From: Sminthopsis crassicaudata
Taxonomy: Eukaryota
Assembly (NCBI RefSeq): GCF_048593235.1
Contig: NC_133619.1
Coordinates: 655,419,744 to 655,483,743, forward strand
DNA: 64,000 nucleotides
Direction: 5' to 3'
Of the stretch, positions 10,111-35,349 are shown one piece after another; the first letter of the stretch is position 1; each line of letters starts with the position of its first letter. The translations under genes and the position numbers were made by a program. The notes under the pieces are model-generated. The model worked only from the letters and a program-made list of their open reading frames with translations. It was not told the origin of the DNA and did not search any database.

Positions 10111-10459
10111 CTATTAATTTGTGCCAAGTTTATAAGAATACAGATCATTCCCCAGTTAATAAATGGTCAAAGAATATCAATAGACACTTTTCAGATGACA
10201 AAATTGAAGCCATTTATACTCATATAAAAATGCTCAAAATCATTATTTATCATCAAAATGTAAATTAAAAACAATTCTGGGTGTCACTTCGCACCTGTCA
10301 GATTGGCTAAAATGACATGAAAAGATAGTAATAATCCTAATATTTTAGAGTATCATCCTCAATATTGTACCTATCATGTACCCATTTTATTCTAATTTTG
10401 GTATGAGGTGTGAAATATGTCTATGCATATTCTAGATATAATATATGTATGTGGAACTG

Positions 10460-13400
10460 AATTTTTTGTTGTTGTTACAATGGAACAATTGGATTCAGAA
10501 AGTAAAAATAACCTAGGAAGAAAAACAAATATGCAAACGGTTTACACTCATTTCCCAGTGTTCCTTCTCTGGGTATAGCTGATTCTGTCCATCATGGATC
10601 AATGAGATCTGAGTTAAATCTTCTCTTTATTGAAAATATCCACTTTCATCAGAATATATTCTCATGCAGTATTTTTATTGAACTGTATAATAATCTCCTG
10701 GTTCTGCTCATTTCACTTAGCATCAGTGCATGTAAGTCTCTCCAAGCCTCTCTGTATTCATCCTGCTGGTCATTTTTACAGAACAATAATTTTCCATAAC
10801 ATTCACATACCATAATTTATCCAATCATTCTCCAATTGATGGGCATCCATTCATTTTCCAGTTTCTATCCACTACAAAAAGGGCTGCCACAAACATTTTG
10901 GCACATAAGGGTCCCTTTCCCTTCTTTAGTATTTCTTTGGGTTATAAGCCCAGTAGTAGCACTGCTGGATCAAAGGGTATGCACAGTTTGATAACTTTTG
11001 GGGCATAATTCCAGATTGCTCTCCAGAATGGTTGCATTGTTTCACATCTCCAGTAGTGATTTGGATCTTTCATTTGAGTGGAAATAATTTCAATTTCATC
11101 ATTTGAAAATTGTCTGTTCATGTGCTTTGACCATTTATTAATTGGAGAATGGCTTGATTTCTTATAGAGTCAATTCTCTGTATAGGAGGCCTTTATCAGA
11201 ATCTTTAACTCTAACAATGTTTTTCCCAGTTTTGTTACTTCCCTTCTAATCTTGTTTGCATTAGCTTTGTTTGCACAAAAGCTTTTTAACTTGATGTAAG
11301 CAAAATTTTCTATTTTGTGATCAGTAATGACCTCTAGTTCTCCTTTGGTCACAAATTCCTTCCTCTTCCACAATTCTACAAGGTTAACTATCCTATATTC
11401 CTTCAATTTATTTATGATCTCGTTCTTTATACCTAAATCATGGATCCAATTTGATCTTATCTTAGTATGTGGTGTTAAGTGTGAGTCCTATGTTTAGTTT
11501 CTGCCATACTAATTTCCAGTTTTCCCAGCAGTTTTGTCAAATAGTGAATTCTTATCCCAAAAGTTGGGATCTTTTGGGTTTGTCAGAGACTTGATTGCTA
11601 TATTTATTCACTATTTTGTCCAGGAAACCTCACCTATTCCACTGATCAACTAGTCTATTTTTTAGCCAATACCAAATGGTTTTTAGTGACCTTATTGCTT
11701 TATAATATAATTTTAGATCCCGTACAGCTAGGCCATCCTCATTTGATTTTTTTTTCATGTAATTCCCTTGAAATTCTTAACCTCTTGTTCTTCCATATGA
11801 ATTTTGCTGTTATATTTTCTAGGTCATTAAAATAGTTTCTTGAGAGGTCTGATTGGTATAGCACTAAATAAAATAGATTAGTTAGGGAGAATTGCCATCT
11901 TTATTATATTCGCTCAGGCTATCCAAGAGCACTTCCTATTTTTCCAATTATTTTAATTCTGGACTTTATTTTTTGTGGCAAGTGTTTTTGTAATTTTGCC
12001 CATATAAATCCTGACTTTCCTTTGGTAGAAAGATTCCAAATATTTTATATCATCCACCGATGTTTTGAATGGAAATTTCTCTTTGTATCTCTTGCTGTTG
12101 GATTTTATTGGTAATGCATAAAAAATGTTGAGGATTTTTTGTGGATTTATTTTTGTATCTTGCCACTTTGCTAAAGTTATGAATTATTTCTAATAGCTTT
12201 TTAGCCAAATCTTTGGGGTTCTCTAAGGATACCATCATATCATTTGCAAAGAGTGATAGTTTGGTTTCCTCATTACTTACTCTAATTCCTTTAATCTCTT
12301 TCTCAACTCTTATTGCCGAGGCTAGAGTTTCTAATATAATATTGAATAGCAATGGTGATAGTGGGCAACTTTGTTTCACCCTGATCTTACTGGAAAGGTT
12401 CCAGTTTATCACCATTTACTTATGCTGTTTACTGCCGGTTTTAAATATATGCTCCTGATTATTTTGAGGAACAGTCTATTTATTCTTATACTCTCAAGTG
12501 GTTTTAGTAGGAATGGATGTTGGATTTTATCAAATGTTTTTTTCTGCATCTATTAAGATGACCATATGGTTTTTGTTAATTTGATTTATTGATATAGTCA
12601 ATTATGCTAATATTTTTTTTAATATTGAACCAGCCCTGCATTCCCGGTATAAATCCCACTTGGTCATAGTGTATTATCCTAGGGATGATTTTCTGTAGTC
12701 TTTTTTGCTCATATTTTATTTAACATTTTAGCTACAATATTCATTAGGGAGATTGGTCTCTAATTTTCTTTCTCTGTTTTCAACCTCCCTGGTTTAGGGA
12801 TCACTATCCTGGGATTTTTTCTGAGAGCTGTTAATAGCTTGTTCTAATGTCTTTTTCTGAAATGGGGACTATTAAGATTATTTACTTCTTCCTCTATTAA
12901 TTTGGGCAAGTTGTATTTTTGAAGGTATTCTGCCATTTCATTTAAGTTATCGAATTTATTGGCACAAAATTGGGCAAAGTAACTCCTAATTATTATTATA
13001 ATTTCCTCTTCTTTAGTGGCAAATTCTCCCTTTTCATTTTTAAGACTAACAATTTGTTTTTCCTCTTTCCTTTTTTCATCAGATTTTCCTAAGGCTTTGT
13101 CTATTTTGTTGGTTTTCTCATAGAACCAACTCAGGTTTATTAATTAATTCAATAGTTTTTTTTTTTTTAACTTTCCATTTTATTAATCTCTCCTTTTATT
13201 TTTACAATTTGAAATTTTGTGTTTGTCTGGGGGTTTTAAATTTGTTTCCTTTTCTAGCATTTTTAGTTGTAAGCCCAATTCATTTACCTTTCTCTTTCTC
13301 TGTTTGATGCAGGTAGGCCTCTAGAGATATAAAATTTCCCCTTATTACTACTTTGGCTGTACCCCAGACATTTTGGAACGATGTCTCATTATTGTCATTT

Positions 13401-13680
13401 TCTTGGGTGAAGTTATTAATTATGTCTATGATTTGCTGTTTCACCCAATCATTCTTTAGTATGAGATGATTTCGTTTCCCATTATTTTTTGGTCTATTTT
13501 CCCCTGGCTTTTTATTGAATGTAATTTTTGATTGCATTGTGGTCTCCAAAGGATGCATTTACTATTTCTGCCTTACTGCATTTGACTTTGAGGTTTTTAT
13601 GTCCTAATATCTGGTCAGTTTTTGTGTAGGTTTCATGAACTGCTGAGAAGAAAGTGTACTCCTTTCTGTCTCCATTTTAG
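10460..13680 (-). mobile_element. Degraded LINE-1 (ORF2 endonuclease/RT fragments), antisense, with internal deletions
   Basis: Minus-strand ORFs 12050..12415 (CPLSPLLFNIILETLA...LSLFANDMMV, RT-like) and 13280..13558 (NLILKNDWVKQQII...QNVWGTAKVVIRGNFISL). Confidence 0.93.
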
Positions 13681-13949
13681 TTTGCTTGCTTTCTTGCCTA
13701 TCTGCCCCTTCACTTGCTATCTATATTTTCCCTTCTACTTTTTTCATCTCTTTTGTCTTCATTCACTTTTTGGTTGTCTTTCCTTATCTGTGTGTTATTT
13801 GCAGATGACTCTTCATAAGATTCCCAGAGACATTTCATTTTCAAACTGCTGGCAGAACTCATTGTTAGGAAGGCAGAGTTTGAAAGAGAGCCCAGCCCTG
13901 GAGTATTGCCTACTCCTTTAAGCCTTTAAGAAGAAAGAGGGATTAGAAA

Positions 13950-14145
13950 TAATTCAGAGTTTTAGCAAAGTTGCAGGATACAAAATGAATCCACATAAAT
14001 CCTCAGCATTTTTATACATTACCAACACAATCCAACAGCAAGAGATACAAAGAGAAATTCCATTCCAAATAATGGTCGATAGTATAAAATATTTGGGAAT
14101 ATATCTACCAAAGGAGAGTCAGGAATTATATGAGCAAAATTACGA
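13950..14145 (+). mobile_element. Short LINE-1 ORF2 fragment, sense
   Basis: ORF 13985..14194: NPHKSSAFLYITN...IKYLGIYLPKESQELYEQNY. Confidence 0.9.
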
Positions 14146-14149
14146 AAAA

Positions 14150-15198
14150 AGCATTTCAATAAAATCTATTTTTTCAAATATTATCATTCTCTGAGGTTAC
14201 TGCTTCAGCATTTTTCTGTATATATTTCTGAGAGTATGCTAAATAGGTATAGTCAATCCATGTTAATTTGGAAGTAATTCCAAATTATTGATACTATATT
14301 AACATTTCCTTCATTTGTGCATATGGCTTTTACTTACATAATTGTGATCCCATGTTGAGACCAATTGACCATTCTCACATGGAGAATGAGAGTAGGACTA
14401 AGAGTCAAGGAAAGACTATCCTGAAACAGAGTTTAAAGGGTTTATTTAACCCAAATTTAGATATGTCAGTGTTACACTCTGGATGTTTGCTGCCACTTGC
14501 TTCACTGAGATTAAGAAAGCATTCTTCAGGGTGTGAGACATTTGCCAGTTCTGTGACTCTGGGGCATTCCCATGACTGTTTTCTGCCTTTTTCTGGTATA
14601 GTTCTGACGTCTACCTCAAAGGTTTTGTTTGTTTGTTTGTTTTCGATCAAATAAGTTAATACCGTTGAATGCTTAGCACAGTGGAAGGCACTGGTGACTA
14701 TTAATTTTTGCTTAATTAATACTTCCTTCTTTCCTTTATTCTTTATTGCTAGATTTCCTCCCACATTCCCTCCTACCTTTCTTTTCAGAGTAAAATCAGG
14801 AATTACTTATTCAAAGGAAAAATCATTATTATTCGATTTCCCCCCCCCCCCCCAATCTAGCCTATCTTGATAAAGAACCGTGTTATTTTCATGCATAGTT
14901 TAAAATTTCAGCTCCTGACAATCCTAGAAAACTTGTGAGGACTCCAAATTTGACTGGAATTTCCAAGTGTAATTTCCAGTTTTGGGGGAAGTACGTTTTT
15001 ATTAATCCATTCGAAAAATATTATTTGTCTATGTGGATTATTTAAAAATTCATTATTTCAACCATCGAATGACGGTTTCATTGCTCGTGCATTGGAAATC
15101 CTTATTACATACAATTCCAAGGGTGTTTCAAAGGGAACAGCATCTATTTAAGTTCTCCTTCTTTTGGACAATTTAAAATTTCTTCCTAAATCTCTTAG
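14150..15198 (+). repeat. Segmental duplication copy (matches 9580-10110 and 1-808)
   Basis: Direct sequence comparison. Confidence 0.93.
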
Positions 15199-16217
15199 GG
15201 TGTTACATAAATTTTTTCAGGTTTTTTGTTTTTTTTCTGATATCATCCTGCTTATCATTTCTTACAGCACAATAATGTTCCATTACAATCATGTTTGTTT
15301 AGTCATTCCAATTGATGAAAAACTCAATTTTAACGAACAACTATTTTGCACCATGGGGTGGTTGGAAGTGAATGTCCCAAAGATGAAAGGTTCCCAAGAT
15401 AATACTGAGGAGGTCTCCTCTTTGACCCTTAGTTGCCTTCTCTTTAAAATGATATTTGACCAGATCAATTAACTCATTCAAAACCAAGTATTTATCGCCT
15501 ACTATGTAGCAGACATTCTTGTAACTCCATGAACCAGAATCTAGTGAAGGGTTTTTTAGAAGGGTCATTACATAAAGATTATATTATTATATTAATAAAA
15601 ATTGTTGAACTGATTATATAAAAGGGTCACAAGAGCAAATGTGATAGGAGAAAACAAAGGAGAAATGTAGATAAAAGAGTTCTCCCGAAAATGTGAGGAA
15701 AGAGAAAGCACTCCCAATTAGGGACATCCAAGAAAACTTCATGGTAGAGGTGGGTCTCGAAAAATTTCAACAAGACAAGGGAAAGAGACAGGCAAAGGGC
15801 CGGCTTCTGTGAGTAGAATGATCACCATCCTACTGGACTCTGGTCCAATTCTAACACTCTTCGCTAGATTCTCATTTGATTCAATCCAACAACACTTCTC
15901 GCGTTACTAACGTTAGACCAAATCAACCAGTGTTCCAGAAGCCACGGTGAATTGAAATAATGGTGGATTGTCTAGACATCCAAAAGACATAAACTGAAAT
16001 TCGGACCTCAGACACTGATAAGTCCCTTCTGTTATTTCTTCTGCTTCATTTTTCTTTACCTGTAAAGTGAAGGCATCTAAAGTGCTTTCCATCTGAAAAT
16101 CAGCAAGGATAATCATCTAGTGTCTGGCCCCAAGGGGACTTACATTCTACTGGGGGACAACATCTCACAGATAAATGTGGTCCCAAAAATCAAAGAAGAG
16201 AATATGTGCTTTTGAGA

Positions 16218-16834
16218 NNNNNNNNNNNNNNNNNNNNNNNNNNNNNNNNNNNNNNNNNNNNNNNNNNNNNNNNNNNNNNNNNNNNNNNNNNNNNNNNNNN
16301 NNNNNNNNNNNNNNNNNNNNNNNNNNNNNNNNNNNNNNNNNNNNNNNNNNNNNNNNNNNNNNNNNNNNNNNNNNNNNNNNNNNNNNNNNNNNNNNNNNNN
16401 NNNNNNNNNNNNNNNNNNNNNNNNNNNNNNNNNNNNNNNNNNNNNNNNNNNNNNNNNNNNNNNNNNNNNNNNNNNNNNNNNNNNNNNNNNNNNNNNNNNN
16501 NNNNNNNNNNNNNNNNNNNNNNNNNNNNNNNNNNNNNNNNNNNNNNNNNNNNNNNNNNNNNNNNNNNNNNNNNNNNNNNNNNNNNNNNNNNNNNNNNNNN
16601 NNNNNNNNNNNNNNNNNNNNNNNNNNNNNNNNNNNNNNNNNNNNNNNNNNNNNNNNNNNNNNNNNNNNNNNNNNNNNNNNNNNNNNNNNNNNNNNNNNNN
16701 NNNNNNNNNNNNNNNNNNNNNNNNNNNNNNNNNNNNNNNNNNNNNNNNNNNNNNNNNNNNNNNNNNNNNNNNNNNNNNNNNNNNNNNNNNNNNNNNNNNN
16801 NNNNNNNNNNNNNNNNNNNNNNNNNNNNNNNNNN
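16218..16834. other. Assembly gap (other gaps: 21824-22000, 22506-22685, 26243-26392, ~41551-41686)
   Basis: Runs of N; ORFs spanning them are artefacts. Confidence 0.99.
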
Positions 16835-17589
16835 AAGAAAGAGGCAGCTTGTCCAGGTGTACAGAGCTAGGCACTGATAGACACAGGACTGGAATCCAGG
16901 TTCTCTGGCTTTTTGCATTTCCTTGCATTGAATAGTACATCTGGGGGATGTGTGCAGAAGCACAGGGAAGGCTGTGACTCAGAAGACATGGGCTTGCCTG
17001 ACCAATTCAGGACAAGGACATTCCAGCTCTTCATAAATATTTACAGAATTGAGTTGAATTTAATTGAACAGAAGAGAGACGGAGAGAACCCGTCCCTCAC
17101 CTAACTGGTGCAGGGAAGGAATGAGTGGCCGGCAGGCAGAACCCTGCTTATTGTGCTGGGAGCAAAGCACCTGGGGCAAAGTCCTGGAAGGTGTATATTG
17201 TTCGCAACAGTCTGGGGATTACTTTGGCTCTGTGCCCCAAAAGCTGTAAAACCCGCAAACCCTTTGATCAGCAATACTATTACCAAAAGTCTATATCAAT
17301 CCAAAAATAAAAAAATAAAAAATGAAAATGATCTTTTTTTTTTTTTCTTATTAGTGGTGACAATAAAGGTTTTTTTATTTTTGTTTTGTTTTGTTTTTGT
17401 TTTTTTTGTTTTGTTTTGTATTGTTTTGTTTTGTTTTTTTCTAAACAGTGTTTTGGGACTAGGAACACGCCTTCCAGGAGCGCTCTGAAAACTGTGCCAA
17501 GAGTCTATGTCTTCAGGGACTTTCCGGGACTGAGCACTTCCTTAAGTACCTGCTTCCCCTCCTCCCCACCCAACCCCAGAGAAAGAAAT

Positions 17590-18190
17590 GAGTTTTTAAA
17601 AAGTCTGAGTTTAAAAAAGGCAGAGTTTTTTAAAAGGTCTGCCTGATTCTCCTTCATTTTCCTTCTGTTTTTTGGTTTGGTTTGGCTGTTCGTCTAGAGG
17701 GATAGCATCTTTCATGCAGACTCCTTTGGAATCGTCCTGCATCTCCGCACTGCTGAGACAATTTGTTCAGATTTGATCATTGGACCAAATCGCTGTGACT
17801 GTGGCCAAAGTTCTGTTTCTGCTCACTCTGCTTTGCCTCATTTCATAGAAGCCTTTCCGAGGGTTTTCTGAAATCTGTTTGTCCCCTTTTAGAATTCTTT
17901 CAACCCAGTCACGGAGCACAACTGGAGCTGCCCACTTGAGGGGCGATTCCTCCACTCCAATGCTTTACAGAACGGTTGTAGATATATTTTGCACAAATAG
18001 ATGTTTTTCTATTTTGCTTTTTATTTCTTTGGGATACAGGCCCGGAGTGGGTCTCCTAGTCTTCACAAGCACGATAATTGTATTTTTATTGGATTTAACC
18101 TGTATTTAACATATTTAACGTGTTTTGGACTACAAGGGGAGGAGGTGGGGAAGGAAGGGGGAAAAAGTTTTGCTAGGGTCAATTTTGAAA
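17590..18190. repeat. Composite L1-derived flank block, paralogous to ~21455-22140
   Basis: Shared ttttaaaag(g)tctgcc(t)gattctc, tctagaggg, atcgctgtgactgtg, cacggagcac.actggagctgccca, ttttctattttgctttttat and ggagtgggtctcc, in the same order. Confidence 0.85.
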
Positions 18191-18194
18191 AAGG

Positions 18195-18402
18195 AGGAGG
18201 AGGAGGAGGAGGAGGAGGAGGAGGAGGGAGAGAGGAGGAGGAGAGGAGGAGGAGAAGCAGGAGGAGGAGGAGTATATAAAGCAGGTTCTGCCTGCCGGCT
18301 TGTCATTCCTTCACTGCACTGGTGACGGACGGGTCTCTCTCCCTGAAGAGATTCGTGATTTTCTAGGAAGACTGGACTTGGATTTCACTGCACTAGGTAA
18401 GT
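18195..18402 (+). promoter_or_regulatory. (GGA)n tract, TATA box, Inr-like site and possible 5' splice donor upstream of the SMG5-like gene
   Basis: TATATAAA at 18273-18280, GTCATTC ~30 bp downstream, TAG|GTAAGT at 18396/18397. Confidence 0.55.
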
Positions 18403-18690
18403 GACGAGCTTGTTCTCTCGGTCTCCCTTTCGTGATTTTTTGGGAAAAGTGTTCTTGATTTTCACTGCGCCGATTAGGGGAGGGACGGGTTCTCTCAGTC
18501 TCCCTTTCCCTGAGGAGATCCTGATTTTCTGGGGAGAGCGGACTAGGAGCTCTCTGCGCCGATTAGGGGAGGGACGGGTTCTTCTCGGTCTCCCTTTCTT
18601 TCCCTGAGGAGATCCCTGATTTTTTGGGAGAGCGGCCTTGGAGCTCACTGCGCCAGTTACCAAGCGACGCGTGAAGAGCGATCTGGAACT

Positions 18691-21365
18691 ATGGAACCCA
18701 ACCAAACCAAAGGACTTCTCCTGAAGATGGTGGGATCAGCACAGCAGCTGGACGCCCTCCTCGCGAGGGAGTCGGCCCACCAAGAAGTTTTCCAGCCCCA
18801 GAATGCGGCCCTGAGGAGCCAACTGGAACAATCTGCCCATTTGCCTCATCCTGCTGAGCCCACAATATTATGGGATGGTCGCGGAAGAACTGCTGTGGAG
18901 GAAAGTGTACTACGATCTCCAAACCCTCCGGGATACCAGGGGAGCCCTTATGGACGCTTGGGGCCCAGAAGGTGCTTACCGGGAGCACCTCAAAAATGGA
19001 ATTCATGTCTATCATTGCCTTTTCTTTTCTATGCAAGCACAGTTCGAGCTGCAATTGGAAAACTACATCTACTGGCCTTCCAGCCAGCCTGGGAGCCAAG
19101 CGAGGAGGGCGGGCTCTCCCTCCGCGGAAGAGATGGACTGGGCCAGGAAGTTCTGCCATCTTTGTCTGCTTCGGATTGGAGACTTGTACCACTATCTGAG
19201 GGAGTTCACGGCCTCGGAGTGAGAGGGAGCAAGCTAAGCTCTACTACTACCGAGCTCTGTCGCTCATTCCCGACCTGGGCTTGCCCTTCGTGCACCTGGC
19301 AACTCTGTCCGGAGCTAAATTTTCTTACGTCGAGGCCACGTGTTTTTATCAGTGTTGCATCCATTCCAAAGTCCCCCACGCTGCAGCCTTCCTGGGTCTG
19401 GAGCAGATCTATCTGAAGATTCAGGAGGAATACAGACAGCTCCGAGTGTTCCGCTGGGGAAACTAGGTCCAGAGCACCAGGCGCGGGAAGATGTGAGAAG
19501 GCTGCTGGTCAGCTTTGTGTATCTCCAGAGCCTCCTGACGCCCCAAGGCAGAAGACACCCGGCGCTGGAGAGGCTGTGCGCGAGGGTCCTGGAGGACTTT
19601 CAGCTGTGTCTCTCCCACCTGGCGATCCAAGCCGGCCAAGGCTGGGCCAGGAGAGCGGGGGCGGAGCAGGGCATGGCTCCTCGCTCTTGCCAAATCAACT
19701 GGTCTTCCAAATGGTCATCCTGTGCCTCTTGACTCTGGAGAACTTGAAGAGAGCGGCTCGGAACTGAGCCACACGGCCATCTCCTTCAGCCTGTTTTCTT
19801 CTCTCATATCGTGCGTCTGGTGGGCGGCAACATCCGGGCGGCGCTGCACAGCCGGGTGGCGCCAGGGAGGGACGAAACGCAGGAGCCCGAGAAGCCTTGG
19901 CTGGAAGAGGGAGAACGGGGACCAGAGCTTCCCGCTCCCCACCCCGTCTCGGTTCACGTCGGCGAGTTCCCAGAGAGCGATCTGGAGCCGCGTTTCTCCA
20001 TTCCACCTTCCTGCCCTGAAGATTCGTGGGAGGACAGCGAGTCCATGGAAGTCTGGGAGCCGGACGGGAGCCGGGACTCCCCCGGGGACTCCTACCGTGT
20101 CTTAGAGGACGGCGAAGATTGGGGGGACGTTTCTTTCTGTTCGCTCCCCGACTCGGACAGCAGCTTCAGCGAAGTAGCCTCAGAAGAAGGAGAAGAGGAG
20201 AGAGCCTCGGAGGAAAGCGCCATCTCCAGCAGCTGGACCCTCCCCAACTCGCAGGCTCTGCAAGAGCGGCTGGACATTCTGTGCGCAGAAGGGCTGCTCC
20301 CGGCTCTCCGGGTCGTCCTGCAGTGGCTGCTCACCGAGCCGGCCCTCAGCGCCCTCAGCTATGCGCGCGTGGCCGGGCCTCTGGAGGGACCTGCTGCTGC
20401 TGCTCAACCTGCTGCCCAGCGCCCAGGAGCTCGGAAACCCCCACCTCGGCTGGCCCCCCGGCTCCGCCAGCTGCTCCCCCACTTTGAGCGGCCCAGCCCC
20501 CCCATCTCTATGCCCCTCCTGGAGGACACCATCCTGCGCTCCCTCCTCCCCTTCCAGGCTGCCCACGCGAGCTTAAACTTTGACCTCGACGTGTTTCCCA
20601 CTTTCTCCAGGGAAGACGTGGCTCTGCGCGCCTGCGTCCTGCGCACGTTTGGCCACTTCGCTGCCCACCTGCCTGACAGTCTCGTCGTGTTCGACCCGAA
20701 GCTGGGCCTCTTTCTCTGGGCGGTTCCTCCTTCGGGGGAGGCTCGGGAGAAAGGGGCGCCGCCCCCGGCCCGGGAAGGCCCGGCCCAGCTGCAGAGACAA
20801 GTGCAGTCCATGGAGACGGCCCTGCGGCTGCTCCGCATTCAGACGGCCCTTTCCCCCTTACCTCATCCCAGACGCCGTGGCTCTGTGGCAGCACCTGCCC
20901 CTCGTGCGGGACATGGCCCAGAGCGGGAGGTTCGTGCTCATAGTCCCAGGATCGTGATCGACGAGTTGGACCGGAGGAAGAAGGAGGCCCCGGCCCGGTT
21001 CGCCCTGCGGTTCTTGGAAGAGCAGCTGAAGCAAAGGAACGGTCGCTTTCGGTGCCAGGTGCAAGTGCGGGGCAAGTGGAGGTGGCCCAAGATAGGAGGA
21101 GAAAACGCGGCTGCCTGGAACCTCCACAGCATCCTCCGCGGCTACGGGGAGCTGCTGCGCGCCGTCGGGGGAGGACGGGGACAGCGCCAGGGGGATGGTG
21201 ACCGTCCTCACGGCTCTGGACCTGGCGGGGGCCGGCCCTTGTCCCCCTCCCTGAGCTCGGCGTTCGAGGCTGCGCACGAGGCGGGGGTGGCCATCGAGCA
21301 CGTCCTCCCCCTTCTACACTCGCTGGAAGGCCCTCAGCCGGAACACGGAGCTCACAAGGTCTTAG
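18691..21365 (+). pseudogene. SMG5: Intronless SMG5-like retrocopy (EST1/TPR domain plus C-terminal PIN domain), frameshifted in this assembly
   Basis: Colinear SMG5 motifs spread over frames: HQEVFQPQNAALR, AEELLWRKVYY, EMDWA..CH.CL..IGDL, RLLVSFVYLQSLL, VLEDFQLCL, LVFQMVILCL, AEGLLPALRV.LQWL, LLNLLP, PYLIPDAVALWQHLP..R..A.SGRF, RIVIDELD, GMVTVLT. No introns; ~13 frame switches. Confidence 0.92.
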
Positions 21366-22025
21366 GGGCAACATTTCATTCATGCATCCGCATGAATGTG
21401 TTTTTAAAGATTCCCAACCCGCCCCCCAACCCAAGCCAAGCCAAGACAAAGAAACGTGTTTTTTAAAAGTCTGCCGATTCTCATCCGTTCTCCTTCGGGT
21501 TTTGTGGTTGTTTGGTTTTGTTTTTCGTTTTTTTGGTTTCGTTTCGTTTCCTTTGGTTTTTCTCTAGAGGGTCTTTCAGCCGGAGTCCTTGGGAATGGGC
21601 CTGCATCTCCGCCCGGCTGAGAACTGGTCCTTGGACCCCATCGCTGTGACTGTGCACAAAGCTCTGTTTGTGCTCACTCTGCTGGCGCCGGCTCACGGAA
21701 GCCTTTCCCAGGGTTTCCCCAATCTGTTTGTCCCTTGTAGAACCCAGTGCCCTTTCAACCGAGGCACGGAGCACGACTGGAGCTGCCCAACTCAGGGCCC
21801 GTTCCTCCATTCCAATGCTCTGCNNNNNNNNNNNNNNNNNNNNNNNNNNNNNNNNNNNNNNNNNNNNNNNNNNNNNNNNNNNNNNNNNNNNNNNNNNNNN
21901 NNNNNNNNNNNNNNNNNNNNNNNNNNNNNNNNNNNNNNNNNNNNNNNNNNNNNNNNNNNNNNNNNNNNNNNNNNNNNNNNNNNNNNNNNNNNNNNNNNNN
22001 TTTTCTATTTTGCTTTTTATTTGTT

Positions 22026-23845
22026 TGGGTACAACCACGTCCTCCTTCTCCTTCTCTTCCACCATCTCCTCCTCTCTTCCTTATCTCGCTTGTGCACACC
22101 TTGACACAGACTAGGAGGGGAGTGGGTCTCCACTGTATACATATATTGGAGAAGGATGAGGTGTGGTACCTAGCCCTGTGCACCTGGACAAGCTGCCTCT
22201 TTCTCCCTCCTCCTCTTCCTCCTGTTCCTCCTCCTCCACTATCTCTTCCTTCTCCACCATCTCCTGCAGGAGGAGGAGATGGTGGAAAAGGAGGAGTAAG
22301 AGAAGGAGGAGAAGGAGGAAGTGAGGAGGAGGAGGAGGAGGAAGAGGAGGAGGATGGTGGAGAATTAGGAGATGATGGAGGAAAAGGATGAGGTGATGGT
22401 ACCTAGCTCTGTGCACCTGGACAAGCTGCCTCTTTCTTCCTCCTCCTCTTCCTCCTGTTCCTCCTCCTCCACTATCTCCTGCAGGAGGAGGAGATGGTGG
22501 AAAAANNNNNNNNNNNNNNNNNNNNNNNNNNNNNNNNNNNNNNNNNNNNNNNNNNNNNNNNNNNNNNNNNNNNNNNNNNNNNNNNNNNNNNNNNNNNNNN
22601 NNNNNNNNNNNNNNNNNNNNNNNNNNNNNNNNNNNNNNNNNNNNNNNNNNNNNNNNNNNNNNNNNNNNNNNNNNNNNNNNNNNNNTTGTCCAGGTGCACA
22701 GAGCTAGGTACCATCACCTCATCCTTTTCCTCCACACATCTCCTCCTCTACCTCCTCCTCCTCCTCCTCACCCACCATCTCCTCTACCATCACCTCATCC
22801 TTCTCCTCCACTATCTCCTCCTTTTTCCACTATCTCCTCCACCTCCTTCTTCAACACCTCCTCCTTCTCTTCACCATCTGCTCCTTCTCCACCATCTCCT
22901 CCTCTTCTTCCTCCTCCTCTACCTCCTCCTCCTCCTTCTCCACCATCTCCTCCTCCTCTTCCTCCCCCATGTCCTTCTCACTCCTCCTCCTCCACCATCT
23001 CCTCCACTTCCTTCTTCAACACCTCCTCCTCTTCCACCATCTGCTCCTTCGTCCACCATCTCCTTCTGTTCTTCCTCTTCTCCTTCTCCGCCTCCTCCTT
23101 GACCATCTCTTCTCCTCCCTCCATGATCTCGTTCTCCTCCTCCTTCTCCTCTCCTCGTCCTCCATCACCTCCTTGGTTCTCTACCATCTCCACCCCCTTC
23201 TCCTTTTCCTCCACCATCTCCTCCTCCTCCTCCTGACCTCCTCCTCCTCCTCCTCCTCCTCCTCCTCCTAATCTTTCTTCATTCTCCCTCATTTACCATC
23301 TCCTCCTCCTCACTTCTCCATGTCCTTGTCCTCCTCCACCTCCTCCTCTTCCACCTCCTCCTCCTCCTCCTCTTCCCTCTTCCTCCTCCTCCCCTCATTT
23401 TCCTCCACCATCTTCTCCATCTCCACCATCTCCTCCTTCTCCACCATCTCTTCTAGAAGGAAGATGGTGGAGGAGAAGGATGAGGTGGTGGTACCTAGCT
23501 CTGTGCACCTGGACAAGCTGCCTCTTTCTCCCTCCTCCTCCTCCTCCTCTTCCCTCCTGCTCCTCCTCTTCCACCATCTCCTCCACCACCACCTCTACCT
23601 TCTCCTCCACAATCTCCTCTTTTTCCTCCTCCTCTATCACCTCTTCCTTCTCCACCATCTCCTCCTCCTCCTGTTAAACATCCTCCTCCTTCTCTTCCTC
23701 CATTTCCTCCTAATCCTCCTTCTCTTCCTCCTCCTCCTCCTCCTCCTCCTCCTCCTCCTCCTCCTCCTCCTCCTCTCCTCTTCTTTCTCCTCCTCTTTCT
23801 CCTCCACTATCCCCTCCTTTTCCACCATCTCCTCCACCTCCTGCT
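22026..23845. repeat. Compound TCC/GGA minisatellite with a ~50-bp spacer motif and strand inversions
   Basis: Spacer ggatgaggtg.tggtacctagctctgtgcacctggacaagctgcctctttct at ~22155, ~22386, ~23478; inverted at 22686 and 16835. Confidence 0.9.
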
Positions 23846-23989
23846 CTACAAAGCTGAATTATCTTAGTATCATCGGAAAAGATCTAGATGATCTCAAAGA
23901 TAAATTTTACTTTTAACACCATGATCCTATTCTGGACAGTCCCTGTCCTCGGAGCCTTGCATTCTGCTCTTTAGTCCACAGACTTTATT

Positions 23990-24480
23990 TTCTTATTACC
24001 GGCCATTTGAGTCCTGTGGATTCTGCTTCCTCAGGGTCTCTAGCATCCATTGCCTTCTTTCCACTAGTGCTACCACCATCTTACAGCAGCCCCCAGGAAC
24101 CGCTGGCCTAAAGGGGCAGATCTGATGGTTTCCTTTCTGGTCTTCTCCCCTCCCTCCAGCCTCCATCATCCCCAAGTCACCCATGTATCCGCCACATAAT
24201 CTGCTCCTGCACGAATCTAGCCACATTCTTCCTCTGCTCAAAAGCCTAGCTTGCCTTGCCTCTTCCTCCAGGAAGCTTGATTTGCTTTCACAATTGGTAC
24301 CAACTTGCCCATTGGACTTTTCCAGGCAGTCTCTCTAACATATACATTATGTGACACTGTGCATTGTTCTTAATCTATGTATGTATATCACTCCCTCAAT
24401 AGCCTGTGGACTTACTATGTCTCATCTAAATTTAGGGCTCCCCTAAGCCTGGCACTGGGCTCTGCACACAGTAGGTGCTA
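23990..24480 (+). mobile_element. LINE-2 3' relic
   Basis: L2-like ...cacattcttcctctgctcaaaagcc... ending in cacacagtaggtgct. Confidence 0.5.
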
Positions 24481-26689
24481 GATATTCGATATTTTAATTT
24501 GAGAGTGAAGATGACGAGGAGGCTGTGAGCATGAAGAACAGAGAGAAGTCGTGAAAGGATTTCGCCTCATTGGGTTTTGGAAGTGTCTGCGAAAAAATAC
24601 GACAGAAGAGGAAATGAGTAGAATCCATGAATTTCTTGACTCAGAGTTCATCTAAGGACTCGAGCAATGGTGCTCATGAAATGGAAGTGCGTGCGTTCTT
24701 GGCACAGAAGCAGCAGAGAGGACGGAGCTCCTCGGCCCTCCAGAATATGTTAGCAGTGGGCGGAGGCTGCCGGCTCCCACTGGGAAGTTCTGAGGCTTTT
24801 TCTTTCTAAAACTTCTCCTTCTATGAGAGAAAACTGAAACTAGCAGACCCGAGATGGCCGGTAATGGGATTTTGCTTTGATGATGTCTTTCTAGCTCTGT
24901 GTCCAAGAGCGGTATTTTATGTGGAGGAGGGACTTAAATATTTATCAGCTTAATTTGATTTGAATTCCTTAATCTACCATCTGGTCCGTAGAATCTCAGT
25001 GCAAAACAATCCTTTCACAGTGGGCTTGCCAACAGGAACATTATGCCCATGGAGGTAAACACCACATGCTTCCTTGGTGCACCAGGGAAGAGATGAGCTT
25101 GGGATTGCCTTCTGGGAATTGTTGCATATGTCTCCCTGAAATCTATTGGTTAAGCAAGCCCAGTGTCTTTTCTGCAGCCATCCCTTGGGCTGTAACTAAG
25201 GTGAACCCTTGTCCTTTGCCCTAGGGTACCACAATGTAGAAGGGGCACTTATAGTCTTTAACTTTAGAGATCCAACTGAACTTAGCATTGACTTGATGGT
25301 TCTGTGATTTCACTGATTTGGAAGAAACATGACAGTCTATTCATACCCACATGATCTGGGTGATTCTGACTCGTGTTCTTCCATAGGTCCACTTCAGGGG
25401 CAGTAGCCAACAGACTGGGGGGCTTCCTCACCTACTTTTGACCAAGGGATACTGTGGACAAAACACCGATCCCCATATGACCTTCCCGATAACGACCCTC
25501 TGCGCTCGTAGCTAGTCTGGCCCTCAGACAAGAGCCTCCCCTACAGAAGCTCGGTTGGAGCTACTAGATATGGGCTTGACCGATATGCGCAGAATCACAG
25601 ACTCTGTGAGGTGAGACATCCACTGTTCTCTGTCCTGGAAAGACAAGAGGACTGTGCCCAATGAGGGAATAGTTTAAGAAAAATTCTGACAAGTTAAAGA
25701 ATGTCTACAAAAGGGAAAGCAGAATAGTAAGAGAACTGGAAACCCAGTGCTTTATAAGGGGAATAAACAAACTGGGAATCTTTACTCTGGTGAAGAGAAG
25801 GTTTTGAACAGACATGATAGCTATCATAAAGAGTATGAGGATCTGTCACTTAAAGCGATTATCCCTTTTCTCAGAAAACAGAACCAGGGAGTTGTGGGTA
25901 GTGACTATAAAGAGGAGGGCATGGGCTTCATGTCAGAAAAACAGACAAACAAATCAGTTTTGAGTTGATCAAAACAACAGTTTTGAGCTGAATCAAAATA
26001 ACAAAATCAATTTCTCAGAAGGGGTTGGACTGCCTTGGGAGAAAGGTTCTCCCTCCTTGGGAGAATTTTAACCAAGGTTGCACAGCCATTTTCTGGGGAT
26101 ATTATCTGGTTATGGGTTAGATCCACGGGTGGTCCGGGAAATGTTTTGCAATTGAGTCTTTGGAAAAGATTCAAAACAAACCTTTTGCAAGTCAAGCTCT
26201 GCTTTGTAGCATCAACTTATCTTGAAAATTTGACAGCTGGCTNNNNNNNNNNNNNNNNNNNNNNNNNNNNNNNNNNNNNNNNNNNNNNNNNNNNNNNNNN
26301 NNNNNNNNNNNNNNNNNNNNNNNNNNNNNNNNNNNNNNNNNNNNNNNNNNNNNNNNNNNNNNNNNNNNNNNNNNNNNNNNNNNNNNNNNNNNCTATCTCC
26401 CTTTCTCTCTCCTTCTTTCTCCTTCCTTCCTTTCTTCCTCACTTGCTTGCTTCCTCCTTCATAATATTGGTACTTGGGATGGCAAAACTACAGATGATCT
26501 AGCTCCCAACTGATCAGGATTGGGAGAAGAGAGCTTGGGATGCTTGTCAATAGGACTCGCGACACTGCGGTTGCCCTACAGATCTGCCCCCCATACTTAT
26601 GAAAATGTCAGAGGATTTGCCATCTTGCAGCACTGCCAGTGTGCCGGCTAGGACTCAGAGCTCTGTGTCTCCCCATTTGGAGTCTGGGG

Positions 26690-27020
26690 CAGTCTTCTTT
26701 TCTCCCTTTTTTCTTTGATTTGCTCCATTGTGTTTGCTATATTTTGGGAAGAAGGAACATTTAGGAGCATAATAATGGTGACGTAGCCCCATCTTGGTAA
26801 AGGGCCATTTTTCTAGGAAGCTCAGCCCACTCTCTGGACAATATCTCATTAATCTCACAAAAGATGATGCTCGCAGTTAATCTTCTCTTTCCTAATTGTT
26901 TCTTGGAAGAAATGAAGTTGGACTCGCTTAGCAAATTTAAAGCACAGCGTCCATTGTGCTTTTTGTGGTGGGTTAGAGAATCCACTGGTGGGGGGCAATT
27001 GGGGGGCATCTCTGGGCAGC
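26690..27020 (-). pseudogene. Possible degenerate HMG-box (TCF/LEF-like) relic
   Basis: Minus-strand translation INEILSREWAEL vs recalled TCF/LEF INQILGRRWHAL, preceded by HHKKH/MDAVL and followed by FPKYS plus a basic tail in another frame; stops and frameshifts present. Confidence 0.3.
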
Positions 27021-27963
27021 AAACTTGAGACAAAGAAGCAGAGGAGACAGTCTTCCAGAGCTGGCTCAAACCTGGGCCTCCACTGGTCGTCAGGGGGACC
27101 CGGATGAGTTGCTTAGAGCCACTGGGCGCTTAGAATATAGCACAAAGAAGGCCAGACCTGGGAGTGGGGGCTCGTAGAGCAGAAAAACGGAGACTCTCAG
27201 AGCTGGAAAGGGATTTGGAATATCAGTCAGAGAAGTTCAGAATTGGGAGAAATCTCAGCACACAGAACATGGAGCAGCCATACTGGGGGGATCTGAACAA
27301 CTTGGAACATCAGTGAGGAACCCCAGCAAAGGGAACCCAGATGGTGGAGCTGCCGGGCCCCAGAGACCTTTTAGCCCACTGGCCTCACTATGGAACGGAG
27401 GTTCCTGGGCTCCAGGGTGAAGAAATGATTTGGCCAAAGCCACGGCCAAGCCTCGGGATCTGAGAAGGAGGGAGGAACAGGGATCTGGCTCCTTAAATGA
27501 AAAGCTCATCAGCTCTTGCTCACAGCAACAATGAACCCAGCTGCAAATGCTGGGCTGCTTAAATAGGCAAAAATGGAAATTGCCATCCCAGAGACCACAG
27601 CCCGAATTTCTGCCCCTTGTCCATTTTTAGCCGCTTACAGCTCCGGCTGCTCTCGGGAAGCCCTCGAGGCCTTTCCTCCAGAGGTCATAGGTTCCCACCT
27701 GCCCTGAGCTGAGAGACCCTCCTGTCTGCTGTAGATCTTCTGAGGGCCAGGAGCAGGACAGGAGTCAGGCCAGCTGGGGGGCAGTTTCTTTGGCTGGCAT
27801 TTCTCTGAGTCTCCCTTTGGTATTATCTTGCCTCCTTTCTGGAGATTTGGGGCCCTGACCTTCAGCCCCCCGTCCACGTATCCCACTCTCCAAGTTCACC
27901 GAGCCTTCCTGTCTTTGTTCACTTTAGCCTGGAATGCCCTCCTCTTGGTGAATCCCAGCTCCC

Positions 27964-31558: not shown

Positions 31559-31853
31559 CTGTGGGAATCTGTAGAGCTCCAGTAGTGTCCCTATCTGGAC
31601 AGAAAGAGCAGACATGGCTCCTTCAATAATAGCTATTACCTTGTCCTGCCTCTCACAGCTAAAATTTGGAGTGGAGGTCAGGCCCTGATCTGACAGCCAC
31701 TGCAGGGAGCTCTCCAATGTCCTGCAATCCTCATAGTAGGTGTTGTAGATGTGAAACAACTGGGTAATGTTAGGGAAGAGCCGAGGGTCTCTGTTGATCT
31801 TCTCCACACAAAACATCAGGGCCAGAAGCTGCAAGTAATTTTTGTACAGCCAC
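31559..31853 (-). pseudogene. V2R exon-2 relic, full-length exon with mutated donor
   Basis: ORF 31340..31834: LLALMFCVEKINRDPRLFPNI...FHIYNTY...TLESSLQWLS...NFSCERQDK..AIIEGA.SALSVQIGTLLELYRFPQ. Donor reads CAG|ATAAGA instead of GT; no other V2R exons seen nearby. Confidence 0.88.
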
Positions 31854-32764
31854 CTGCAGGAGTGGGGAGCAGATCAGAAGCTAGCAACAAGTTGCACAGA
31901 ACTCAAGAACTTCAAAGAGACTCATTCTAAGATTAGATTATAGGGTCCAGAGCTCAGGCAGCCGGATATGTATCACAAACACCTCCTTTTTACATCAATT
32001 ACCCCCTTCATTATTAACCCGCCTGAAAGTTTGAGTGTAGATAATTGGTGGGGGAAATCTTGGCAATGTCCCTGGCAGGTACTAAGCACATAACAAATGC
32101 TTATTGACTGACTCATCTCCTGTGAGATGTGAGGAACTGACCCAGAAATCAGCATGAGTAACAAGGAAACTTTCTTAAAGAGCTCAATTAGAATTTCAGC
32201 ACAATGGGGCCCATTTTTAGAAAACAGCCTTCTGTTTCTGTTCAAGGAAACTGTGTAGAGAGCATTGACAAGGTTATGAAAAGCTTGTGATTTTAGGAGA
32301 TCACTGAACTTTTAAAAACTGTGCAGGTCATATGTCCTTGTTTTTCTCTAGAAAAAGAATTGGATCTAGAGGAATGGGAATGAGTAGGGAGAGGAATTAA
32401 GTGAACACTACAATTCCAAACCAAACTTAATTTCCAAAGATACACTTCATACCTACAATTTCATCCAAGTGACTTTAGTAATTTTAGATGAAAGAAAAAG
32501 ATGAGACTATTGTAGGATTTTAAAACTTGCAGCAATTTATTGGATTTCTGGCACATGAACTAATGGACAATGGGCTTATGGACATGTATAAATTCTCAAT
32601 TTATGATTATTTCATCATGTTATTTGTTACATCACTTCTAGCATGTGTCATGATACTATGCCTTCACGTAATTTCTGTAATTATAGGTAATACCTCCCAT
32701 ATTGATGGATTTAGGTTTCAAAGTCATGACCACCCTATGCTCTAAATCAAAAGAAAAGGGGAGA

Positions 32765-33207
32765 TGTTAGGTCCTTAGCAGGAGCTAAGTCGGTCCTTAA
32801 CAATTCTCTAGCTCAGGGTTTACATCTTTAGTTCACACCTTGAAAAGGAGTTTCCACCTTTAGACTTCTGAAAAGGAGTTTAGCCCTTTAAAAGGAGCAA
32901 GCTCATTGGTTGTAGGAGTTCCCACAGGCCCCTGGGAGTACCCACAATCCCCTTCTCTGGGAGGATAAAAGGAGAAGGCAGTTGGTAAGGAAGCAGTCTG
33001 GAGTGGGTTAAGGACAAGACTTCCCAGGAGAACTTCAGGGAAGCTCGAGGAGATTCAGAGCCAGGATTGAGGAAGAAGAGGATTCCAGATTCAACCTCTG
33101 CTCTGGCTGGAGGCTCCAGAAGAAGCCTGCTCGGGGAGAAAAGGATTTCAAGAAAAGAAACCTCCTCCCAGAGAAGGATTTTAATTGACGGACAAGAGAA
33201 CACTACA
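32765..33207 (+). mobile_element. Solo ERV LTR (TG...CA), directly upstream of the T-box ORF
   Basis: Begins tgttaggtccttagc and ends gagaacactaca; internal ATTGG and GATAAAAGG; resembles a marsupial LTR family from memory; no clear TSD. Confidence 0.75.
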
Positions 33208-33244
33208 GACCGGCCCTAAGGAGGACGGGGCCAGTCCAGCAGCG

Positions 33245-35349
33245 ATGCTCACTCCCGCAGCCCCTCTAGGCCCTCAGGCGGCCATGCCCTTGGCCGAGAA
33301 GGCCCCAGGCCCCAGTGCCTCCGGGCAGGACCGCCCCTCCCGGGGGCCCCACAGGGAAGGCGTCGGAGCTGAGAACCAGCCCCCGATGGGCTGTGCTCCT
33401 GTCGCCCCGCAGGGCGCGGATCCCGGCCCTTCTCCTGTCTGGGCCCATCCCTCCTCCCCGAAGCAGCCCTCGGCGGCGGGGCACCAGCAGCCTCCCCTGG
33501 AGAACTGCGGCGCCGCTTGCTCCGGAACGCTCCAGGTCGTCCTCTGCAACCATTCCCTGTGGCTCACGTTCCATCGGCAGCAGAACGAAATGCGCCTCAG
33601 CAGGCCGGGCCGGGCCATGTTCCCCTTCCTGGCTTACCACATGCGGGGCATGGACCCCCGGGCCCGCTACCGCGTCTCTGTGGACATGGTGCGCGTCGAC
33701 CAGCATCACTGGCGCTATGAGGAGGCCGGGTGGGCTCCGTATGGACCCGAACAGAGCCACGTTCCCGGGAACCAGGTGTATGCGCACCCAGACTCCCCCA
33801 ACACGGGCGCGCACTGGATGGGGCGCGAGATCGCCTTTAAAATGCTCAAGCTCAGCAACGAGGAGCCCGCTGGCGGGAGCGCGCCGCGCGCCCTCCGGCT
33901 CCGGTCTCAGCACCGGTACCGGCCCCGGCTCCACGTGGAAGAAGTCGCCTGGGAGACCAGGAAGCGCCGGGCGCCCCCTCCCGGAGCCACGTCTTCAGCT
34001 TCCCCGAGACCGAGTTCATTGCCGTGACTGCTTATCGCAACCGGGAGCTCATCCGCCTCAAAATCGAGCACAATCCCTATGCCAGGGCCTTCCGCACAGA
34101 CGCGCCCTCGGCAGGAGCCTTGAGCGCCGGGCAGCCGCCGGGACCAGCCGCCGCCGCCCCCTCCTCAGAGGCGGCTCCGGACCCCGCCGGCCAACGGCCA
34201 GTGCCCCAAGAGCGCCGTGCCCGGGACCGGGAAATCTGGCCTCGCGGCACCCTGACGGACTCGGAAGCTGCAGCCCCGGGGGAAAGGGCCCCCAAGAAGA
34301 GGCGTCTGTCTCCTGGGCCTTCAGGCAGCCCCGCCATGTCCTCAGCGAGGCCCCAGCGAGCAGCCCAGGCCCAGCGGCTGCCAGCTCCAGAAGCCAGCGC
34401 CAAAGCCTCCCCAGCAGCAGCTGCTGAGCGCCCTGGCGGCCTGCTGGGAACAGAAGAGGCCGCTGTGCAGGGGGGGAACAGCGCGATCCCCGCGGCCTGC
34501 TGGGCCATGCAGCAGCCCCAGCAGCCCCTGCACTGGGGCTTGGACTGCACTCCCAGCAGCCTGCAGACCTCCACTGCTCCACTTGCCGCGTCTTATGGCT
34601 TCGGTCTAGAGGGTCTGCTCGACCTCCTGCAGGAGCCCACATTGCCGGCAGAACCCTCCCAGGACAGCGGTGGGGACAGCCGCCCATCTCTACCTCTGCA
34701 CCCTGTCCCTGGAGCCCACGGAGAGCCAAGTGTTGAAGAGCAAATCTGGCTCCTTCTGAGGCAAATAGAGCTGGAAGAGGCAGCCCTGGCTGAGGGAGCT
34801 CCCAAGAGGAGACGTTTATCTCCTGCTCCTTCAGCCAGCCAGGCAACGGGTTCAGGGAGGTCCGATGGAGAAGCCCAGGACCCGCTTCTTACAGCTGCAG
34901 CGGGCAGCCCCTCCACCTTCTCAGAAGCAGCTTTTGAGGGCCCTGGCCACCTGCTGGGTGTGCAAGAGGCTCCTATCCTGGAAAACAGGAGCGGGATCCC
35001 TGTCCTCTGGAGTGCCCCCCAGCAGCCCCAGCCATCCTTGCATTCTTTCTTTTACTCCCCTCCCAGCAGCAGCCACAGCAGGAGTCTGCCAAGCTTGGAA
35101 GATGTGGCCATGGGGCCCCCCACTTCTCCACTTGCCATGCCTCATGAGCCCAGTCCTGAGGAGGCTCTCTTCTCCCTACTGGAGGCACCCGGCTGCCTCT
35201 CAGAAAACTCCCAGGGGACCAGGAGCGACTGTCTCCCCTCTGGGCCCTCCCAGCCAATGCGTCCTGCCCCTGGAGCCCAAGAAGCCGGGATAGTGTCCCT
35301 CCATTCCAATGCTTTCTCAAATGCTGTTAATTTTTTATTGTTTGAATAA
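33245..35349 (+). CDS. TBX21-like: Intronless T-box transcription factor, TBX21/EOMES (Tbr1) subfamily-derived; ~701 aa if a 1-bp deletion at 33951-33953 is restored
   Basis: [12 protein letters not shown]...NEM....GRAMFPFL...VDQHHWRY...[27 protein letters not shown] (ORF 33185..34027), then [19 protein letters not shown]...[13 protein letters not shown] in the frame of ORF 34024..35349. DQHHWRY matches recalled TBX21 rather than EOMES/TBR1. Confidence 0.85.

Follow-up and report, generated by a model that had tools for sequence, protein, structure and literature searches.

Canonical SMG5 is a multi-exon, single-copy factor acting in nonsense-mediated mRNA decay (NMD). The subject of this study is an intronless, SMG5-derived sequence in the genome of Sminthopsis crassicaudata (the fat-tailed dunnart), which lies on the + strand of a 64,000-nucleotide stretch of contig NC_133619.1 (positions 655,419,744 to 655,483,743; hereafter the window) and is colinear with SMG5 from an ATG at 18691 to a TAG at 21363-21365. 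It is one copy of an intronless, multi-copy SMG5-like (SMG5L) family that is already annotated in RefSeq but is essentially unstudied. Full-text literature searches returned a single figure legend, on a mouse open reading frame (ORF). A mouse Smg5-like ORF with detected peptides is reported in the GENCODE CLS preprint (10.1101/2024.10.29.620654). The reading frame of the window copy is broken as assembled, and the interpretation that we favor, with a probability of about 0.65, is that the frameshifts are most probably consensus errors and that the locus is probably intact.

Canonical SMG5 and SMG5L share the same order of EST1, EST1_DNA_bind, linker, helical region and PIN-like domain, and the first PIN aspartate is kept in both. 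SMG5L differs from canonical SMG5 in being intronless and multi-copy and in having a shorter linker. Its total length is 891 amino acids, versus 1001-1129 in fish SMG5. Overall identity between SMG5L and fish SMG5 (P0040/P0048) is ~33-34%.

Membership of the window copy in a dunnart gene family

Used as a word-search query, the longest ORF piece of the window returned a set of RefSeq proteins of 850-891 amino acids that carry the name 'nonsense-mediated mRNA decay factor SMG5-like' and belong to Sminthopsis crassicaudata, Sarcophilus, Notamacropus and Petaurus, with bilby and koala added by a later search. The ORF listing of the window holds only fragments, spread over all three forward frames, and an uninterrupted ORF of ~850-890 codons is absent from the copy as assembled. 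Homology was traced across frames with tblastn, in which the best match, P0001 (XP_074158794.1), tracks the window across 13 changes of frame, every piece being almost perfectly identical; Pfam applied to the raw ORF pieces gave EST1 (PF10374) in one piece only, in frame 2.

Counting substitutions, the window copy is 99.0-99.4% identical to at least four intact dunnart genes that RefSeq annotates as SMG5-like, its named close relatives being XP_074158794.1 (from locus L001), XP_074158795.1, XP_074120953.1 and XP_074140774.1. In RefSeq, dunnart SMG5-like proteins number at least 12 and are encoded on four chromosomes, and the 90% cluster of P0001 contains four more dunnart proteins from three chromosomes. 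The gene at L001 spans 2,676 nt without interruption and lies 85 kb short of the end of CM109183.1, a chromosome of 657 Mb (GCA_048593235.1). L002 (CM109183.1 656896598-656909261) is likewise intact, sits right at the end of its chromosome record and carries a partial annotation, while the intact L003 and L004 lie 5.06 Mb into CM109181.1 and 4.3 Mb into CM109182.1, respectively. A more distant dunnart pair, L007a/b, is found at 304 of 314 Mb on CM109185.1.

The window is colinear with L001 over ~18 kb and with a further locus, L009, over ~25 kb, and its near-identity and colinearity with annotated SMG5-like members include the promoter and leader. The RefSeq dunnart SMG5-like genes and the window copy have in common the intronless gene, the TATA box, the tandem-unit leader and ~18 kb of flanking sequence, whereas the window copy alone carries 13 one-base indels, a stop codon and eight other private substitutions. 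A preliminary description of this DNA, made from the window sequence by itself, had proposed a single intact, diverged paralog. That proposal does not survive the 13 frameshifts and the stop codon of the assembled copy, nor its place in a set of 13 or more dunnart copies that are near-identical to it or related.

With respect to chromosomal setting, dunnart copies cluster no more than 0.6 Mb from the end of CM109183.1, no more than ~5 Mb from the starts of two other chromosomes and, on a fourth, ~10 Mb before the end.

Frame lesions and the tile in which they occur

The coding sequence (CDS) of the window copy differs from that of L001 by 22 substitutions and 13 indels. Each indel is a single base in length (six insertions and seven deletions, at 18836, 19225, 19442, 19669, 19754, 19793, 20360, 20448, 20853, 20945, 21167, 21234 and 21307), and a six-way alignment of the window and five paralogs showed that all are private to the window and that 12 of them fall in homopolymer runs. 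The nine private CDS substitutions include GGA>TGA at 19220, which is 5 bp from the indel at 19225, and a CT/TC swap at 21247-8 amounts to one C shifted between neighboring runs. The intact paralogs L001-L004 differ among themselves by 18-47 substitutions and by no frameshifting indel. Private one-base indels in the CDS number 13 in the window, versus nine substitutions, and none in four paralogs and three in L009, versus 2-30 substitutions.

The indel excess affects coding and non-coding DNA alike from 11.05 to 24 kb and ends abruptly. Private one-base indels number 39 in the window, all in homopolymers, versus 1-3 per paralog in the block 11052-16217; six versus 0-1 in 16835-18180; 13 versus 0-3 in the CDS block 18691-21365; and four versus 0-3 in 21366-21823. 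The blocks 10120-11050, 25349-26242 and 26393-27962 have 0-1 each in the window and paralogs alike, and across all the blocks the private substitutions of the window are mostly inside the range of the paralogs. Counted per kb against L009 and L001, one-base indels run at 4-15 over 11-24 kb (the comparison with L001 gives 20 for the bin at 23-24 kb) and are nearly nil over 24-35 kb (two against L009 and one against L001). Apart from the bin at 23-24 kb, which is of low complexity, and a divergent stretch at 31-33 kb, substitutions run at ~3-18 per kb. The left edge of the tile falls at 11051, on a length difference of 132 bp that is common to all comparisons. Private indels stand to private substitutions as 13:9 in the CDS and as 39:23 in non-coding DNA, which exceeds the ratio in the paralogs 10-fold or more.

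We know of no mutational process that gives a sharp-edged, ~13-kb tile of homopolymer indels with normal substitutions. Errors in noisy long-read assemblies of multi-copy regions, from Oxford Nanopore Technologies (ONT) reads or continuous long reads (CLR), are likewise one base long, bound to homopolymers and balanced between insertions and deletions, and they come with normal substitutions in a read-sized, sharp-ended tile. A departure of the window from pure long-read homopolymer error is a nonsense substitution, outside homopolymers, among its indels. A sharp-edged tile of this size with an indel excess of 10-fold or more and normal substitutions thus points to an unpolished long-read consensus, and we consider it very probable that the CDS indels are artefacts of consensus error. 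That the stop codon at 19220 is an artefact as well is somewhat more probable than that it is real. One dunnart assembly was built with Flye from ONT and PacBio CLR reads, and its polishing with Pilon was limited to short reads that map at quality 30 or more (PMC11091235), a restriction that would leave multi-copy DNA unpolished. A telomere-to-telomere dunnart assembly was made from ONT reads, with Hi-C used for phasing and scaffolding only (PMC13408496).

Read evidence was taken from Logan contigs of four runs in three studies, for which the library type is unrecorded. The runs in which window sequence occurs all bear the same organism label and contain at most 0.70 of the sampled window words (0.63-0.70 in those that supplied contigs). 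Among the 31-mers of the window, 0.84 avoid the indel sites and 0.78 occur in four fetched paralogs. The share in the runs is close to the expectation without private variants, which suggests that the runs hold essentially none of the private variants of the window copy. All contig depth restores the frame at nearly every indel site listed (nine in the CDS, each with the frame restored in all four runs, and three in the leader), and all contigs across 19220 read G.

An alternative is that the window copy is a dead, very young duplicate in a functional family, with real mutations behind the frameshifts, entirely or in part, or behind the TGA at 19220 if nothing else. The 13 frameshifts and the stop codon as assembled are what such a copy would present, and L009 (10001-12677; CM109183.1, 656.33 Mb) is comparable in that, set against the intact paralogs, it carries three one-base indels that are its own and lie in G/C runs, and the RefSeq model for it (P0003, 851 amino acids) does not translate from the DNA of its own locus. 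Neutral decay, however, gives no excess confined to a sharp-ended tile, and it would have to produce an indel-to-substitution ratio far above that of the paralogs, private CDS indels that are without exception one base long, and private one-base indels that sit nearly all in homopolymers throughout the tile. The listed indels are, moreover, not carried by the read contigs. We regard a young dead copy as possible but doubtful, and favor the reading that the frameshifts are consensus errors in an intact family member.

Retention of the family across marsupials

SMG5-like relatives are annotated in devil, bilby, tammar, sugar glider and koala. Gene span and CDS length are equal in all 10 marsupial loci checked, which come from five species; the equality was seen in dunnart, devil, tammar, sugar glider and bilby and on the marsupial-like contig L005, with the partial koala model outside the count. 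This is at variance with the multi-exon, single-copy organization of canonical SMG5. Seven genes with DNA (dunnart, devil and the L005 contig) translate exactly to their annotated proteins, that of L005 having 963 amino acids, and ORFs of 880-963 codons are kept in 9 of 9 translated loci, out to a synonymous divergence (dS) of ~1.

The ratio of nonsynonymous to synonymous divergence (dN/dS) ranges from 0.27 to 0.84 over all pairs and from 0.39 to 0.62 for pairs with dS of at least 0.14. Between dunnart and devil it is 0.40 at dS 0.33 (bootstrap 95% interval 0.33-0.48), between dunnart and L005 it is 0.40 at dS ~1.07, and the bootstrap intervals of all three deeper pairs tested lie below 1. By segment, the N-terminal and PIN parts give 0.30-0.48, except for two devil paralogs in which PIN gives 0.74, and the linker gives 0.47-0.58 in the same pairs (the devil paralog pair aside). 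Neither a dN/dS near 1, which had been named as grounds for abandoning a functional reading, nor loss of ORFs over copies and species was seen. A dN/dS of ~0.4 indicates that the family is functional but fast-evolving, under moderate purifying selection. The earlier suggestion of a long-lived functional retrogene thus holds for the family and fails for the window copy as assembled, in which the frame is broken.

The same data bear on the possibility that the window holds an ordinary processed SMG5 pseudogene under neutral decay. An intronless, frame-broken copy has the appearance of one, but the long ORFs intact in every translated locus to dS ~1, the dN/dS of 0.4, the conserved promoter and leader, and a divergence from canonical SMG5 that is common to the whole family speak against it. 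Retention of the ORF together with dN/dS refutes a neutral pseudogene at the level of the family, and for the window we consider this explanation highly improbable.

One devil SMG5-like gene (L006; Sarcophilus CM109178.1, 79.27 Mb) lies antisense within the span of a gene encoding Laminin_G, VWC and EGF_CA domains, at a locus far from chromosome ends.

Domain architecture and partner-binding residues

In an intact paralog, Pfam places EST1 at residues 64-170 and EST1_DNA_bind at 181-375, with PIN_4 below threshold. A phmmer comparison with the human SMG5 PIN structure (2HWY) gave E-values of 3e-11 for the C-terminal ORF piece of the window and 1e-36 for P0001, and a profile search gave 2e-73. 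An AlphaFold model computed from a 49-sequence alignment has a mean predicted local distance difference test (pLDDT) score of 69.5; its helical and PIN parts are confident, and the region at 390-517 (~128 residues) is disordered. The top Foldseek ranks are the SMG6 TPR domain (4UM2), the SMG7 N-terminal domain (1YA0), Est1, the human SMG5 PIN domain and the C. elegans SMG5-SMG7 complex, with a template modeling score of 0.82 to 2HWY when normalized by target length. On this architecture Pfam, PDB and AlphaFold/Foldseek agree: SMG5L combines an EST1-like module with a C-terminal PIN fold that is closest to SMG5. Two features of the preliminary description are borne out, namely a colinear, CpG-rich copy that keeps both domains and a shortened acidic linker.

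The SMG7 heterodimer interface of SMG5L lacks the small glycine of canonical SMG5: the G-V-G of fish SMG5 reads G-I-(H/N/R/D) in marsupial SMG5L and G-L-(Q/K/R) in eutherian SMG5L. We take this fish glycine to be equivalent to human G120, assuming a 3-residue N-terminal offset. The human SMG5 G120E mutant has reduced SMG7 binding (PMC8233366). In the phosphoserine pocket, the Lys of the LLW.K motif is invariant, and SMG7 R163/Y164 align with His167/Tyr168 of P0001; the pocket Arg is replaced by H or Q in most Australidelphian copies and is R in P0026 and in eutherian SMG5L. At the aligned positions of the PIN active site, the first Asp is kept, and the residue equivalent to SMG6 E1282, which is Gly in SMG5, is Glu in marsupial copies. 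Replacement of both the interface Gly and the pocket Arg suggests altered partner binding, and SMG5L is most likely a UPF1/NMD-linked adaptor with such a change, as predicted from its homology.

Eutherian relatives and age of the family

The eutherian proteins annotated as 'SMG5-like' (rodents, elephant and deer; P0027-P0038) are not canonical SMG5. Their PIN domains score 152-162 bits against human SMG5 over the full 162 residues (phmmer), the human sequence having been taken from PDB alignments only, and are clearly diverged. A word search with a fish SMG5 query found only teleosts among the 120 matches listed, and in a fish-rooted tree constructed without mammalian canonical SMG5 the eutherian SMG5L proteins form the sister clade of the marsupial family. 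Relative to human and fish SMG5, marsupial and eutherian SMG5L share derived residues (PRTV>P(R/K)IV, EF>EL, an RP motif, FS(Y/F)PL.L and WKE.G>WKA.S). Like marsupial SMG5L, eutherian SMG5L is divergent from canonical SMG5 and without the interface Gly; it differs from marsupial SMG5L in being longer (~970-1017 amino acids) and in keeping the Arg-Tyr pair of the pocket. From these residues and the tree, a single origin of marsupial and eutherian SMG5L, of therian age, appears likely.

Promoter, leader and read contigs

The TATA element and the duplicated ~90-bp unit reported in the preliminary description were both recovered. The former is conserved among paralogs (Table 1), and a related CATATAAAGC with a downstream motif occurs in the more distant dunnart copy L007. 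The latter corresponds to a tandem unit of period 94 at 18462-18654, accompanied by further degenerate copies. Leader units are present upstream of both devil genes as well, and paralogs differ in how many they have. Conservation is high over the ~50 nt that precede the ATG, and the start codon has a Kozak context with A at -3 and G at +4. The gene body has a GC content of 0.52-0.72 and a CpG observed/expected ratio of 0.4-0.9. Within ~1.2 kb 3' of the stop codon, the unmasked sequence contains neither an A-run of at least 8 nor AATAAA/ATTAAA; absence of a poly(A) tract is expected for an old insertion.

A spliced 5' untranslated region (5'UTR) had also been proposed. Every leader unit contains a donor-like CAG|GTA(A/G)GT, which accounts for the idea of an intron, but no GT-AG joint across the leader was seen in the contigs of the four runs. 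The sole joint found there is a 90-bp skip (18492>18583) with ends TC..CT, which equals one repeat unit. In these runs, which amount to 0.65-3.4 Gb, single contigs have depths of ~150-2,200, more than plain shotgun sequencing of a ~13-copy family would give. We rejected the contigs as proof of transcription since they include the TATA box despite their high depth.

Taken as a whole, the preliminary description portrayed a unique, intact, diverged SMG5 retrogene with a TATA promoter and a spliced 5'UTR that acts as a tissue-specific NMD modulator. Both domains are indeed kept, paralogs share a conserved TATA box and leader, and the family is under purifying selection. The broken frame of the assembled copy, the dozen or more annotated dunnart proteins, the 99% identical copies on three chromosomes and the missing splice joint are nevertheless difficult to reconcile with a unique retrogene, and we judge it very unlikely.

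Table 1. Features of the SMG5L locus, in window coordinates
Feature	Position	Strand	Evidence and remarks
(AGG)n microsatellite	18192-18272	+	Tandem Repeats Finder (TRF); directly upstream of TATA box; length varies among paralogs
TATA box TATATAAA	18273-18280	+	Sequence; identical in L001, L003 and L004
Leader: tandem units of ~77-94 bp, then conserved stretch of ~50 nt before ATG	18281-18690	+	TRF and paralog comparison
SMG5-like coding region, 13 one-base indels as assembled	18691-21365	+	tblastn and alignment with L001
EST1 (14-3-3-like), residues ~64-170 of intact paralog	18881-19202	+	Pfam PF10374
Private nonsense codon GGA>TGA, codon 177	19220-19222	+	Six-way alignment; in GA-rich run
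EST1_DNA_bind helical domain, residues ~181-375	19233-19813	+	Pfam PF10373; fold as in structures of the SMG6 TPR domain and the SMG7 N terminus
Acidic, Ser-rich disordered linker, residues ~390-517	19856-20239	+	Model pLDDT 23-29 over 390-509
C-terminal helical region, residues ~518-720	20240-20848	+	Confident model helices; columns conserved with canonical SMG5
SMG5-type PIN-like domain, residues ~721-882	20849-21335	+	phmmer and Foldseek against 2HWY
Tile rich in window-private one-base homopolymer indels, holding the whole gene	11051-24000	.	Per-kb and per-block counts

Several further features of the window are of note. A short inverted copy of part of a leader unit (17072-17149, - strand; 81-85% identity) lies ~1.2 kb upstream of the TATA box. 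The N run at 26243-26392 has the same length as the paralogous L001 sequence, indicating a mask rather than an assembly gap; further N runs include 16218-16834 and 21824-22000. The duplication block extends into a TBX21-like retrogene (31627-34825 in the window against L009:19483-22677; 95.5% identity with 8 gaps in 3.2 kb), a region outside the error-rich tile.

Interpretation and implications

Several observations weigh against the view that the window copy is an intact member of a functional family. No identical copy was found among the five dunnart loci fetched (L001-L004 and L009), each of which differs by 17-52 CDS substitutions, and the syntenic locus in GCA_048593235.1 was not identified among them; the window copy would then be another paralog or another assembly's version of one. 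Truly broken copies may exist, given the three one-base indels of L009 itself, and the nonsense substitution at 19220 is no change in homopolymer length and could be real. Logan contigs drop rare variants and lack the private substitutions, so they are compatible with the indels being either present or absent. These contigs also reach ~10-14 nt upstream of the TATA box. Finally, the proposed effect of the replaced interface residues draws on homology and on partly assumed residue numbering.

The scenario that we favor is as follows. Retroposition of an SMG5 mRNA gave rise to an intronless SMG5L gene, which Australidelphian marsupials have kept under moderate purifying selection. In the fat-tailed dunnart the gene has been amplified within large segmental duplications near chromosome ends, and the duplication block found in the window and L009 carries the TBX21-like retrogene as well. 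A noisy long-read tile of ~13 kb most probably introduced 13 spurious frameshifts into the assembled sequence of what is probably an intact family member. In the worst case, if the stop at 19220 is real, the window copy would be a very young pseudogene.

A bolder possibility, which we offer tentatively and think rather unlikely in its full form, is that SMG5L is a single ancient retroposed paralog that predates the split of marsupials and eutherians, has lost canonical SMG7 pairing, evolves rapidly, was amplified in dasyurids together with the TBX21-like retrogene to at least a dozen active copies in segmental duplications close to chromosome ends, and could regulate or antagonize UPF1-dependent decay in a lineage-specific way. 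If that is the case, the dasyurid amplification would resemble the germline and early-embryo gene arrays of eutherians.

For this genome, the analysis implies that multi-copy regions can contain read-sized tiles of homopolymer error, that 'broken' genes within them are no proof of pseudogenes without raw reads, and that any ORF call between 11051 and 24000 of the window is unreliable. With regard to NMD, work in the field treats SMG5 as one gene, and SMG5L is a selectively maintained paralog that lacks the glycine of the SMG7 interface. The paralog is present across marsupials, is apparently common to many eutherians and is amplified in the dunnart. As the dunnart is becoming a laboratory marsupial, functional tests of SMG5L are feasible in the species in which the family has expanded.

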